A stretch of 64,000 nt of DNA from Hyaloraphidium curvatum SAG 235-1 (lineage: Eukaryota; Fungi; Monoblepharomycota): contig JAIVFI010000016.1 in NCBI GenBank assembly GCA_025558095.1, positions 496,001 to 560,000 of the forward strand, written 5' to 3'. Both the position numbers and the translations under genes were made by a program. The notes under the pieces were generated by a model that was not told the origin of the DNA, ran no database searches, and was given only the letters and a program-made list of their open reading frames with translations. Below are positions 18,924 to 25,066 of the stretch, piece after piece (position 1 is the first letter of the stretch; each line of letters starts with the position of its first letter).

Positions 18924-21821
18924 TCACTTCTGGCGGAAGTTGCAGAACCACAGGGCGAGGTAGGCGACGAGCAGCCAGCCGATGCCGTTGATGAAGGCCA
19001 CCGCCATGTAGAACCTGCAGAGAGCGAAAGCGATCAGATCGAGCGCAACGCGGCGCCGAATGCGACGTACCCGGTCGAGGTGACTTCGTAGTGATCGATG
19101 CCGAAGCCGACGATGGCGGCCGAGGCGTTGCGGATCCACCCTGGAGAAGAAAAGGGGGATCAGCACCAATCATGCGCGAAGGAGAGGCGAGAAACCCACA
19201 TTCGAAGCCGAGCGACGAGGCGACGTACGCCTCACCGTTGATCGAGGTGCACACAAAGGTGGTCGGCAGAGGGTTGGCGACGAGGTAGTTCGCGAAGCCC
19301 ATGAGCGAGGCCGCGGCGGTGGTCTGGTTGAGCGAGGTCTGAAGGGCCGCCTCGTTGCTGACGGGGATGTTGACGGCCGCGCTGAAGGCGGCGCGGGCCG
19401 CAGCAGTCATGGTGTTGAGATTGTCGATGGTGCCAGCGGCGTTGTTGGCGGCAACGGCGCCAGCGCGCGCGACCTCGAGGTTCGTAAGCGCCCGGGCGGT
19501 GCGGTAAAGGGAGTTGACGGTGTCGTTGACGGCTGCGGGGGCATCTTGCCTGACGCGCGGGAAGTGGGTGCGTTAGATCGCCGCAAACCCGAGTGCGGAC
19601 AATCGGTGCTCACCAGATGCCGAAGCTGTTGAGGCCTTGGACAATGGTCGGGTTGGCGGCAGCGGCGGTCGCGGTCAGGTTCTTGGCGGCGCCGCCGAGG
19701 CCGCGGACCGCAATGCCGGTGGTGTCGAAGGGCACGCGCTCGCGGTCCAGGCAGTAGAGCGGCTGGCCGACGCACTCGTCGCGCATCATGGGAACGTAGA
19801 GCATGCGCGGCCAGGCGAACCACTGGAAGAAGGCGCGCACGGCAGGATGGCGGAGGAAGAGGAACTGGTCGGTGATGTAGAAGGCACCCATCATCAGGCA
19901 GACGTAGAAGTGCAGGGTGAAGGTGGCGCTGGGAAGGGCGGCGGATCAGATCAACGCATCGGTTGCTCGGACACAGAAACTCACTTGGCGTAGGGGATCG
20001 AAGCGGCGATGTAGGCGCAGACCATGTTGAGGCCGGTGGTGTGGAAGGCCTCGGGGATGGTGTAGCCGATGTAGCGCCCGGGATAGACCCAGTTCGACAT
20101 GTTGAACATGATGGCACCAACGCAAGCCTGCGATTGGGTCAGGCGGACGTCAAAAGCAGGGAAATGCATGCAACCAACCATGATGGCCGAGACAAAGATC
20201 CATTCGACGAAGAACATGACGAGCACGTGGGCGAGACGGTGGTAGTAGCCGGCGGCCTCCTCGTGGTAGAACATCTTGCGCTTCTCGACCCAGTAGGCGA
20301 TGGCGGACGAACCGAAGCCGGCGGTCATGAGCTTGTACGAGAAACCCTCGGCGGCACGGCCCTCGTAGCCGCCTGCGCGAGATCCGTCAGGGCACGATCG
20401 CCATGCGATCCGATGCGCGCACGAAACCCACCGACGTTGCGGTCAAGGCGCCAGAAAGCGCCGCCGAAGAAGCAGCCGACGATGATGCCGGCGAGGAAGC
20501 GCGAGGTCGACATGATGGGGTTGCGGATGTAGATCATGACCTGGCGCTTGAGGAGCTGCCAGACCTGGATGTAGAACGGGGCGGTCTGGTAGAAGCCGGC
20601 GCGGTCGAGGATCGACGGGGCCGCGTCGGCCTTGGTGACGACGTCGGCGATGGAGCCCTGGCCGGTGTGGATGGCCTCGACCTTCTTGGAGAGGATGGTG
20701 CGCTCGGACGAAGCCTCCCATGTCTCGATCAGGCGGTCGGGCTGCGCGGCAAGGGCGTCGGCGTAGACCTCGGCTGCGGCGGTGCGTGTGAGCAGCCGTT
20801 GATCAGTGATAAGAAGTGATCAACGCACCAGGGTTGCCGGCGACCTGGATGCCGAGGCTCTCGAAGTACAGGATGGCGTCGACGACGCGGCCGAAGTAGC
20901 AGAGCTTGCCCTTGGCGAGCAGCAGCAGGTAGTCGAACTGCGACAGGATGGTGTACGAGGGCTGGTGGATCGTGGCCACGCAGGCGAGCTTGCGGAGGCG
21001 AGTGACCTCGACGACGTTGGCGATGATTTCGCGGCCGGTGTTGGAGTCGAGGCCGGTGGTGGGCTCATCGAGGAAGAGCACCGAGGCGACGGGCAGGAGC
21101 TCGAGGGCGACGTTGCAGCGCTTGCGCTCGCCGGTCGACAGGCCGCGGACGATGGCAGAGCCGATCCTACGGTTCTCGCAGTAGCCGAGGCGCATGACCT
21201 CAAGCACGTCGTTGATCTGCATCGATGCTTAGCTCGGGTCACGTTGCTGATGGGGAGATCACGCACCCTAGCCTCGCGCTGGGCCTGGCTCCAGTCCTTG
21301 GGCAGGCGGAGGGCGGCCGCGAAACGCAGCATCTCCCTCACCGTCAGCTCGGGCGGCAGCAGGTCGTCCGAGGTGACGTAGCCGGCCTCCTTGACGAAGG
21401 TGCGCTGGAGCAGCTGCGCTCCGTTGAGGCGGACGTCCTGGGTCCACTTGCCGGTGGTCTTGCGGAAGGCCAGGATGTCGAGCAGTGTCGACTTGCCGGC
21501 GCCCGAGGGGCCCATGATCGCAAGAGTCTCACCCGGCTGGCGGGGGACGTTAAGCGGGGGACCGAAGTCGGGAACGTCGGCACGCACCTTGCAATACCCG
21601 GAGACCATGTCCAGGAGCACCTTGGGCTTGCGGTCGACCTTCAGCACGCAGCTGATGTCCTTGAACGAGAAGAAGGCCGGGTTCAGCTGGTTGGGGTCCG
21701 TGACGGCCCATGAGGCCAGCCGCGCGATGCGGTCGCCGGCCTTGGGAAGGGCGATGGAGGGCGCCGCGGCGGCGAGTTCCTTCTCGGCGAGCACGGCTTC
21801 GGTAGCGGCGTTGGCGGCCAT
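18924..21821 (-). CDS. ABCG half-transporter A (NBD-TMD), multi-exon
   Basis: Walker A GPSGAGKST, signature LSTGERKR, Walker B LFLDEPTTGLD, H-loop IHQP, ABC2-type TMD; ends LWFCNFRQK*. Confidence 0.92.
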
Positions 21822-22273
21822 CGTGTCGTTGGTGTCTGCAGCCGCCGATGCCCGAAGCAGTCCTTGCGAGACGTCAATGGCGAATGCGCAATGGCAGTCG
21901 AGCCACCGATCCCGTCTGTCTCCCGACGCGGGCCGCCAGGGCGCATTCGGAAATTGATCGGGTCCAGATCAGAACCCCGCAAAGGCCGGAAAGCGGCGGC
22001 GGCTGCACGGGGCGCGTCCAAAGCCCGCGCCAGTTCACCTTGCTAGAACTAAACCAATTTGTCGGGGGCCGCGGGGCAAACGCGTTGGTGGGGAGCCGGC
22101 GATCTGCGGCCGAAAGCGGTTTCCGATCGGCGGCAACTGTCGTTGCGCACCGCGATCGCGGATCCCCAGTGCCCTAGCTACCGAGCTTTGTCTCCCCCCG
22201 ACATTGCTGGGGAAACTGCTCACTTCATTCGGCTAGGCAACCGACGAACCCCGACGCGCAACGTAGCACCGAG
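21822..22273. promoter_or_regulatory. Putative bidirectional promoter shared by the two ABCG genes
   Basis: About 450 bp between divergent ATGs; contains a CCAAT near 22054. Confidence 0.45.
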
Positions 22274-25066
22274 ATGGCATCGGAGGACGCCGCTACGAAC
22301 GTCGCCGCGACCGCGGACACGCCCCGCGGCCAGGCCCCGGTTGGCTACACGGTGCGCTCCCCGCGGCCGTCCCCCGGCGGCGCCCGCTGATCCGCTCGCC
22401 GGCAGGTCACCTGGGAGAATGTGAACTGCAGGATTCCGGTCACGACGGGCTTCATCTGGAACAGGGAGAAGAAGGTCGTGCACTCGCTGATCGATTCGAC
22501 CGGCTTCGCCCGCCCCGGCGAGTCCCTCGCCGTCATCGGCCCTTCGGGCGCCGGCAAGACCACGCTGGTCGGTGGGTAGAGCGGGCGCCGGCGATGCGGT
22601 TGCCTGGGCCGCCGCTGACGCTTCCGCGTCCTCCTTGCTCGCAGACATCCTGTCCCAGCGCAAGTCGCTCGGCCAGCTCACCGGCGAGGTCCTCGTCAAC
22701 GGCACCAAGCCCGACGAGTTCTTCAAGAAGCGCCTGGGCCAGATCACCGTCATGATGGCCCACATCCCCACCATGACCGTGCGTGAGACGCTCATGTTCG
22801 CCGCCGAGTGCCGCATGCCTCGCAACTCCACGAGGGAGGAGCGCATCGCCCGCGTCGACGAGGTCATCGCCGGCCTCAAGCTCACCAACGCCCAGAACAC
22901 CCCCGTCGGCGACGAGCTGATCCGCGGTGTCTCGTCCGGCGAGAAGAAGCGCACCGAGGTCGCCACCGAGATGATCGCCCGCCCGCGCATGCTTTTCCTC
23001 GACGAGCCCACATCGTGAGCTGATCTGCGCTTCTCTCCCTTTCGAACGATGCGCTGACACCGGTTTCCGCTTCAGGGGCCTCGACGACTTTGGCGCCCGC
23101 TTCACCATGGAGCTGGTGCTCAAGTACGTCAAGTCGGAGAACGTCTGCGTCGTTATCGTCATCCATCAGCCCTGCGAGGCCGTCTTCAAGCTCTTCGACA
23201 ACACCATGATCATCTGCGAGGGCCGCACCTGCTACTTCGGCCCTACCTCGGTCTCGGAGTCCTACTTCAGCACCATGGGCTACCCGACGCCCAAGCTGCA
23301 GAACCCCATCGAGCACTACCGTAGGTTCCGCGCGCTGCGTGCATGGGCAACTCGTGCTGATCTTGCTCTCGTCCGCAGTCGACGTCTGCTCGGCCAACGC
23401 GACCGCCGCCGCCGACTACTACGACAAGTCGCCGCTGGCCGCTGCCAACCTTGCCGAGATTGCCCGCCTCAAGTCGCAGCAGTACACCGCGGTGCGCTAC
23501 TCGGAGCACATCGTCGAGCGTCCGTGGTACGACCAGATCAAGCTGCTCGGCCACCGCGTGCTCCTCCGCTACTGGCGCAACCCGTCGACCTCGTGGGGCC
23601 GCCTGTTCATGTTCACCCTGCTCGGAATCCTCTTCGGTGTCTTCTTCCTGAACGTGGGTTGATGGCTGCTTTTCTTTCCGTCTGATCAGGGCACTGATCT
23701 CCCCTGTGATCAGCTCACCAACAACCTTGCCGGCATCCGCAACCGTCTTTCGGTAACCACGACCTTCACCTTCCTCGCCATTTTCGTCGCCGTGGCCGCC
23801 GTGCCGCAGTTCCTTGAGGACCGCGAGCTCTACCTCCAGGAGCTCGACACGGCGTTCTACACCACCATCCCTTACTGGCTCACCTACCTCCTTTGCGAGT
23901 GAGTTGTATACGCATGCCGTTGTTCCGAGCCTCTCATCGAACCTTCTCGCTTCCAGAGTCTGCTTCACCACTGTGATCACGACCCTCCAGCTCATCATCA
24001 TCTGGGCCATGGCCGGCTTCCCCTGGCAGGCGTTCGGCCTCTCGTACTCCATGATGTTCGTCATGTTCTGGCTCGCCACTTCGATCTCGCAGGCCTGGTC
24101 CGCCTGGTGCAAGACCCTCGTGCAGGCCTACACCGCCCTCTGGGCCGCTGGCCTCATCTTCTACGCCTTTTCGGGTGCCCAGGCTCCGCTCGGCATCGTG
24201 TCGCCCGGCCTCAGGTGGCTCGCCGACATCAACTACTGGCGCTGGTGCCTGCAGTACGTCGTGAGTACCCGGATTTTGCCTCGGTGATCAACGATCAACC
24301 TGACCCTCATTCTCCTCCGCAGATCTGGCAGGTGATGAAGGACTACATTATGGACTGCCCCACAACTCCCTCGGTCAACTTTGCCGGCCCTGCCGCCCGC
24401 GGTTTCGTCAACGCCCTCAACAACACCTTCGTCGGCGAGCCCGGCAACGCCGTCAACGTCGCTGCCTTCTGGCAGGGCATTCGCCTCATCAACGCCAACC
24501 AGTTCGTCTCCGGCCTCGACGACGCCACCGCCGGCACCCGCTCCGATCTCGCCGGCAACTCGCAGGCGACTGCCAGCCTCGTCGCGCCGATCTCGAACGC
24601 CACCAACTTCGCCCCGACCCCGGCCGGCTGGGCCCCTGCCGTCGGCTCCTTCGTGAGTATCGCTTTCCCGCATTCTTCTTTCAGGGAGAAGCTGACCTAG
24701 CTGTTGCAGGGCCTGTACCAGAACGCCTCCACCACCCTCACCCAGATCGCCCAGAACTCGGCGATCTTCCCGCCCGGGTACTTCTGCCCCGTCGGTCAGG
24801 GTGTCGACTTCATCCGTCGCTACCGCGACCTCTCGCCCGAGAACCCCGCGACGAGTGAGTGTCTTCCGATAAGTTGTCCCGTTCGGATCTGAGCTGACGA
24901 AACCCCCCTCCCCCAGCATATGTCGCATACCTTGTCAACATTGCGCTCTTCGTGTTCTTCTGCGTGATGGTGGATAGCTTGTTTGATTTGCGGGTGTCCG
25001 GACTGACCAAACCTCCCGCAGACCGTGACGGGCCTGATGTTCTCCCGCAACTACCGCAAGAGGTAA
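22274..25066 (+). CDS. ABCG half-transporter B (NBD-TMD), multi-exon
   Basis: Start MASEDAA; GPSGAGKTT, VSSGEKKR, LFLDEPTS|GLD, IHQP; TMD; ends MFSRNYRKR*. Confidence 0.92.

Follow-up and report, generated by a model that had tools for sequence, protein, structure and literature searches.

Two head-to-head ABCG half-transporter genes in the chytrid fungus Hyaloraphidium curvatum point to an undescribed heterodimeric exporter

We analysed a 64,000-nucleotide stretch of the genome of Hyaloraphidium curvatum SAG 235-1 (contig JAIVFI010000016.1, positions 496,001 to 560,000 of the forward strand), which we call the window and number from its first letter. Two genes for half-size ABCG transporters, A and B, diverge here from a short common spacer. 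Our results point to this pair being an undescribed fungal heterodimeric ABC exporter, organised like the animal sterol pump ABCG5/ABCG8 although unrelated to it. A first-pass annotation of the same DNA had called the pair fungal, and H. curvatum is indeed a fungus of the Monoblepharomycota. The locus is laid out as follows.

18924-21821, minus strand: gene A, an A-type ABCG half-transporter of 815 residues with nine exons and eight introns (from Pfam, frame and GT..AG modelling, and RNA contigs).
Coding exons of gene A, minus strand, stop included: 21821-21588, 21536-21267, 21216-20829, 20773-20432, 20372-19985, 19928-19614, 19549-19200, 19140-19071, 19014-18924.
22274-25066, plus strand: gene B, a B-type ABCG half-transporter of 731 residues with eleven exons and ten introns (from Pfam, RNA contigs, and frame and splice-site modelling).
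Coding exons of gene B, plus strand, stop included: 22274-22351, 22406-22571, 22645-23014, 23076-23320, 23379-23653, 23714-23898, 23957-24260, 24323-24652, 24710-24854, 24917-24969, 25022-25066.
21822-22273, no strand: spacer of 452 bp between the two ATGs and presumed bidirectional promoter, comprising both 5' untranslated regions and, at its core, a stretch without exact-match RNA contigs (21916-22190, no more than about 275 bp).

Both genes were modelled from three-frame translations, searches for GT..AG introns and exact-match RNA contigs from a single run (X1), which behaves as RNA since its exact-match contigs carry GT..AG joints. Gene A runs from an ATG at 21821 to a stop ending at 18924. 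RNA supports its intron 19613-19550, the exon boundary 19199/19200 and a junction at about 21537/21588 that removes 21587-21537 (the contig end is loose, at 21538), and the NCBI models of two paralogs, P0003 and P0005, are co-linear with our model. Gene B runs from an ATG at 22274 to a stop ending at 25066; RNA contigs show seven of its ten introns as GT..AG joints, the other three coming from frame and splice-site modelling, and the NCBI model P0015 is co-linear with the protein and 80% identical to it. Each gene encodes an N-terminal ABC_tran domain followed by ABC2_membrane_7/ABC2_membrane (Pfam), that is, the nucleotide-binding domain (NBD) then transmembrane domain (TMD) of a half-size ABCG, and both proteins are co-linear with ABCG2 and with the halves of PDR transporters. 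A and B are therefore intact, spliced and transcribed ABCG half-transporter genes and, because exact-match spliced contigs of each are present in run X1, both are transcribed in one sample. The two proteins share 31% identity over 400 residues. GC content at third codon positions is 0.91 in A and 0.92 in B, and the fraction of C at these positions is 0.64 and 0.63, respectively. The first-pass annotation had described two divergent NBD-TMD genes spanning 18924-25066, clearly diverged from each other, rich in C-ending codons and with ATGs about 450 bp apart, and our models reproduce this description down to the exact end coordinates. One candidate feature was discarded: in gene B, a Walker A motif that seemed degenerate and without its lysine came from translating into an intron; once spliced, gene B encodes GPSGAGKTT.

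The catalytic motifs of the two NBDs lie at the following positions.

20959-21512, minus strand: gene A NBD motifs, with Walker A GPSGAGKST at 21512-21486, the Q-loop position GYVTSDD at 21383-21363 (Ser for Gln), signature LSTGERKR at 21141-21118, Walker B VLFLDEPT at 21081-21058 and H-loop ATIHQP at 20976-20959.
22538-23172, plus strand: gene B NBD motifs, with Walker A GPSGAGKTT at 22538-22564 (followed by an intron), the Q-loop region GQITVMM at 22737-22757 (canonical Gln absent), signature VSSGEKKR at 22929-22952, Walker B MLFLDEPT at 22989-23012 and H-loop IVIHQP at 23155-23172.

Walker A (GPSGAGK[ST]T), Walker B (LFLDEPT) and the H-loop (IHQP) are canonical in every A and B protein that we examined. 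The Q-loop glutamine and the V/L-S-G-G-E signature that are usual in ABCG half-transporters are found in neither type. Aligned to ABCG2, gene A has Ser in place of the Q-loop Gln and Thr in place of a signature Gly. Across chytrid genera the Q-loop residue is Ser in A-types and Val or Thr in B-types, and the signature is LSTGE in A-types and VSSGE, sometimes VSTGE, in B-types; judged by this conservation, the changes are a family-specific deviation and not decay.

To place the locus in its genome, all 31.9 Mb were scanned with Pfam, which revealed many minus/plus pairs of ABC2_membrane matches about 3 kb apart, and the loci were compared by local tblastn with the spliced A and B proteins. The genome holds 14 head-to-head pairs, each consisting of one A-type and one B-type gene (12 close pairs and 2 divergent ones). 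At 11 loci besides the window, one gene is 50-90% identical to A and the other 50-90% identical to B, and in every case the two are transcribed away from a shared spacer; loci on contigs C18 and C40 carry more distant A/B pairs (40-48% identity). The window's paralogs have DFJ74DRAFT locus tags. With all 14 of the 14 loci head-to-head, the pairing cannot be put down to chance. Searching the whole genome with one protein of each type gave no intact lone copy of either, the only lone copies being four partial, degraded fragments, A-type on C27 and C34 and B-type on C21 and C39. These remnants lack a partner on the opposite strand and may be decaying copies. Paralogous loci resemble each other in nucleotide sequence only from one stop codon to the other, the spacer excepted; since this similarity is limited to the two coding regions, both coding sequences have been kept by selection in every copy while their surroundings diverged. 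We also built one maximum-likelihood tree for the A genes and another for the B genes, using the 12 close pairs and three outgroup pairs. The trees are congruent: in both, all Hyaloraphidium copies are monophyletic and the groups {C5a, C5b, C9, C36} and {window, C12, C32}, the latter with C10 adjoining, are well supported. The recurrence of the same groups in the two trees indicates that the module was copied as a unit within the Hyaloraphidium lineage.

Two further features of these loci were noted. The divergent pairs (C18:613800-622300 and C40:276600-285400) apparently have few or no introns, and their B-type signature, V/I-S-T-G-E, is A-like. On C5, two near-identical A/B pairs (572300-580300 and 588700-596700) lie about 16 kb apart in mirror orientation, which points to a recent large inverted duplication.

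A half-size ABCG is functional only as a dimer. We predicted the structure of an A:B complex from the TMD and loop of the sister pair on C12 (P0005/P0015, 75-80% identical to window A and B). The prediction reached an ipSAE of 0.64, compared to 0.00 for the best control; the mark set for this score is reached by 51 of 78 solved complexes and by 2 of 108 mismatched pairs. At least 42% of contacts were shared between runs, and the predicted local distance difference test (pLDDT) score of the partner was at least 59. The confident predicted contacts fall on transmembrane helices TM1/TM2 and TM5 of both chains, where ABCG dimers usually meet, and none of the confident contacts in the P0005/P0015 model involves the loop inserts described below.

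Relatives in other organisms were sought with sister-locus exons in stop-free open reading frames (ORFs) and with a profile of seven A-types; both approaches gave proteins of full length, whose genomic contexts were then compared. Looking in related genomes, as the first-pass annotation had proposed, we found the divergent pairing kept in Gonapodya prolifera (two pairs), Synchytrium microbalum (adjacent locus tags g00983/g00984 and g04082/g04083), Zopfochytrium polystomum and Chytridiales sp. JEL0842. A joint tree, in which the window pair nests inside both clades, shows mirrored A and B sub-clades across chytrid genera. An exhaustive profile search for A-types among 1.84 billion representatives gave only a handful of clusters above 600 bits, and all the named ones are chytrids. 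Next below these come a protein of Corallochytrium limacisporum (463 bits) and a Logan contig (446 bits), followed by full-size ABCGs. These two proteins (P0145 and P0149, respectively) are half-size, come from outside the fungi, carry an LSTGE/ISTGE signature and branch on long branches basal to the A clade, so that a pre-fungal origin is conceivable.

We considered whether A and B might instead form two separate homodimers that act in the same process without binding each other, placed head-to-head by a shared bidirectional promoter or by an inverted tandem duplication. Several observations favour this alternative or weigh against a heterodimer. Both halves have a complete and equally canonical set of Walker A, Walker B and H-loop, which would permit a symmetric dimer of either one. 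Most obligate ABC heterodimers are marked by NBD asymmetry, and we see no one-sided loss of catalytic motifs among the A- and B-types examined; the functional asymmetry of ABCG5/ABCG8 or of the PDRs is thus not mirrored here. A and B are also unlinked in several Chytridiales: in Dinochytrium kinnereticum they lie on different contigs, each beside unrelated genes, and two A-types of Irineochytrium annulatum and a B-type of Chytridium lagenaria have no ABCG neighbour, showing that linkage is not obligatory. One A-type of Gonapodya sp. JEL0774 likewise has no B-type neighbour (on a 6.4-kb contig). Moreover, a duplication carries neighbouring genes along regardless of any interaction between their products. 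Finally, the complex prediction shows a likeness to ABCG dimers in general, may reflect memory of solved ones, and cannot rank A:B against A:A or B:B.

Against two homodimers, however, stand at least 13 duplications in which neither partner was lost alone from an intact pair, and A and B sub-clades that mirror each other even where the genes are unlinked. The confidently predicted A:B interface also speaks for direct binding, though homodimers would be compatible with it. The unlinked genes form a single sub-clade whose sister, JEL0842, is still linked; most simply, therefore, the head-to-head arrangement is ancestral and was broken once, and by this phylogeny the module would predate the split of Monoblepharomycota and Chytridiomycota. 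On balance, we consider it probable that A and B form a co-regulated A:B heterodimer, because the 1:1 pairing was never broken through many duplications, the trees are mirrored and the arrangement is conserved across two phyla, and we regard independent homodimers as unlikely. The heterodimer proposed in the first-pass annotation is thus supported in part, by this strong comparative evidence, by the expression of both genes and by a complex prediction that passed its mark, but not to the extent that the modelling would place A:B above the homodimers.

Some annotation and context details emerged from the same comparison. In S. microbalum (QEAO01000003.1) two cytochrome P450 genes directly adjoin the A/B pair and may form a metabolic cluster with it, which would be a hint to the substrate. 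Public annotation has fused the A-type of Chytridiales sp. JEL0842 to a RasGEF gene (1756 residues) and labels the A-type of Phlyctochytrium bullatum (P0041) 'Aspartokinase'. An aspartokinase gene lies directly upstream of the A-type in Dinochytrium, which suggests conserved synteny around the unlinked A-type.

We then asked how the two halves relate to known ABCG transporters. The best matches of both types among sequences in the PDB are the C-terminal halves of Cdr1/Pdr5 (232-278 bits), with ABCG2 the second-best solved relative (194 and 214 bits). Further matches are plant half-size ABCG25, ABCG8, ABCG16, ABCG5 and ABCG1, in a slightly different order for A and B. Both types score higher against ABCG8 than against ABCG5 (145 versus 127 bits for A, 179 versus 132 bits for B), the overall order being ABCG2, ABCG8, ABCG5. 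Since PDR transporters and ABCG2 give the higher scores with either half, and ABCG8 outscores ABCG5 for both, A and B are not ABCG5/ABCG8 orthologs, and we rejected this orthology on the PDB scores. The family tree took in the N- and C-halves of 15 full-size ABCGs beside A and B, whereas ABCG5 and ABCG8 were compared through the PDB scores only. In this tree, A and B are each monophyletic and sisters to each other (Shimodaira-Hasegawa-like approximate likelihood-ratio test, 100; 99 in the joint tree), apart from all N and C halves. Phylogenetically, then, A and B are sister paralogs; they share essentially no intron positions, except for one pair a few residues apart.

Given the preference for Cdr1 and Pdr5, A and B might represent the two halves, N and C, of a full-size PDR transporter, either unfused or split apart later. 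Fungal PDR transporters are indeed the top PDB hits of both types, and in language-model features the loops bear a weak resemblance to the PDR_CDR loop domain (scores of 0.87-0.90, which fall below the reliability mark). Nevertheless, the grouping of A with B apart from all PDR halves rejects their assignment as N and C halves. Both types match the C-half better than the N-half, and a simple split would not yield genes in head-to-head orientation. We therefore hold a PDR origin of this kind to be very improbable.

The first-pass annotation had likened the pair to ABCG5/ABCG8 and suggested a possible role as a lipid or sterol transporter. In its strongest form, this would make A and B the fungal counterpart of ABCG5/ABCG8, an obligate heterodimeric sterol exporter. 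The head-to-head layout with a short spacer does resemble that of ABCG5/ABCG8 (PMC3724490), and there are N-glycosylation sites in the loops of both proteins. The likeness, however, holds for gene organisation and extends neither to orthology, given the PDB scores, nor to the asymmetric, degenerate ATP site, and a housekeeping sterol pump would hardly exist as 14 fast-diverging copies. We recognised no genes of a sterol pathway in the flanks. The sterol suggestion itself is unsupported, nothing in our data pointing to sterols, and the lineage-specific amplification and the affinity to PDR transporters and ABCG2 are more in keeping with an exporter family that is diversifying; we give the sterol-pump explanation little credence.

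Both proteins have a large insert in the last extracellular loop.

19014-19852, minus strand: last extracellular loop of gene A, about residues 567-786, with an insert of about 200 residues between conserved cysteines that is rich in Ala, Asn and Thr and has several N-x-S/T sites.
24231-24918, plus strand: last extracellular loop of gene B, about residues 532-700, with an insert of about 150 residues that differs from that of A.

In all genera the inserts, which lie between conserved cysteines, measure about 210-240 residues in A-types and about 170-190 in B-types, and their length is kept in 15 of 15 aligned A-types and in 17 B-types. The equivalent part of the paralog P0005 is predicted to fold into a bundle of long helices (mean pLDDT 88.9), and that of P0015 into four long helices (mean pLDDT 74.8). 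A Foldseek search with the A-type insert fold gave no PDB match at E<=0.001, and Atlas feature searches with both inserts gave no score above 0.90. Among the Hyaloraphidium paralogs the inserts are the fastest-evolving parts of A and B alike: mean identity is 0.79 in the NBD, 0.59 in the TMD and 0.51 in the loop for A, and 0.84, 0.70 and 0.47, respectively, for B. Such rapid divergence of the extracellular inserts suggests that substrate or acceptor specificity has diversified. Together with the affinity to PDR transporters and ABCG2, the 14-fold amplification with its diversifying loops speaks for a family of exporters with varied substrates, and the amplification probably means that the family is important in the ecology of Hyaloraphidium.

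On the A side of the spacer an exact-match RNA contig covers 21666-21915 and on the B side one starts at 22191, which leaves at most about 275 bp untranscribed between the genes. A blastn comparison of the window spacer with the spacers of paralogous pairs found no nucleotide similarity. Two copies of the octamer TGTCTCCC (GGGAGACA on the other strand) lie in the window spacer, at 21917-21924 and 22189-22196, and both are no more than 2 bp from the contig ends at 21915 and 22191. In a k-mer scan this octamer was present in 8 of 11 paralogous spacers compared to at most 7 in shuffles, and gives a weak hint of a common promoter or start-site element; the remaining enriched words are coding sequence of B exon 1. 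In the flanks, ten long ORFs gave no Pfam match, and many long ORFs here are artefacts of high GC content. Between 9000 and 35000 of the window, where GC is 62-72%, many overlapping ORFs of 200-500 residues lie on both strands without a Pfam match. ORF length is no evidence of a gene in the H. curvatum genome.

These results lead us to a working model of the module. A and B would assemble 1:1 as a heterodimer by way of the contact surface common to ABCG dimers, with TM1/TM2 of one half facing TM5 of the other. The dimer would contain two composite ATP sites with canonical Walker A, Walker B and H-loop, a missing Q-loop glutamine and an S-T/S-G-E signature. As the same canonical and deviant motifs recur at both sites, these look equivalent and not like one live and one dead site. 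The dimer would be a PDR/ABCG2-type exporter of a hydrophobic or amphipathic substrate, with the two different helical-bundle inserts sitting above the exit. The module would have been head-to-head before the Monoblepharomycota/Chytridiomycota split and later copied as a unit to give the 14 pairs in Hyaloraphidium. Going further, we tentatively suggest, with somewhat less than even confidence, that it is an ancient, independently evolved obligate ABCG heterodimer in which different four-helix bundles jointly cap the exit and copying of the whole module diversifies export or its acceptor. It would be at least as old as that split and perhaps older, since the A-like protein of the holozoan Corallochytrium is basal to the A clade.

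We know of no heterodimeric ABCG half-transporter in fungi. Our literature search found no published description of the A/B family, in line with the first-pass annotation, which knew of no described fungal equivalent, and a survey of fungal ABC proteins lists only Adp1- and YOL075C-type ABC-G members in Batrachochytrium dendrobatidis (PMC2848647). A second lineage whose two ABCG halves kept a head-to-head order over hundreds of millions of years would repeat the ABCG5/ABCG8 arrangement independently, and would allow one to test whether a shared promoter is selected to balance two subunits. For studies of ABCG mechanism, the family offers a putative heterodimer that has no degenerate ATP site, no Q-loop glutamine and a new, confidently predicted extracellular helical domain.

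Comparison with known systems shows which features the A/B module shares and which are its own. Drosophila White/Scarlet/Brown and plant STR/STR2 are heterodimeric half-size ABCGs in which the choice of partner sets the substrate, as A and B would be in our preferred reading. To our knowledge, there is no conserved head-to-head pairing among their partner genes, which come from different ABCG lineages than A and B and are not fungal. Human ABCG2, like A and B, is a half-size NBD-TMD exporter; its NBD is co-linear with theirs and its TM2/TM5 dimer interface is the one predicted for A/B. Unlike them, it is a homodimer from a single gene, with a Q-loop Gln, a VSGGE signature and a short last extracellular loop. 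Pdr5 and Cdr1, the best-scoring solved relatives, mainly through their NBD2-TMD2, share the enlarged last extracellular loop and likewise belong to expanding, fast-evolving exporter families. In contrast to the half-size A and B, whose ATP sites are both canonical, PDR transporters are single NBD-TMD-NBD-TMD chains with one degenerate ATP site. ABCG5/ABCG8 is a parallel in layout. In both systems two diverged half-transporter genes lie head-to-head across a spacer of a few hundred bp and have been kept so over long evolutionary time, the ABCG5/ABCG8 layout being conserved from humans to arthropods (PMC3724490), and the products of both are probably glycosylated in the last extracellular loop. 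The A/B module differs in being non-orthologous, in having no degenerate ATP site, in its 14 copies and in its much larger extracellular helical-bundle inserts.

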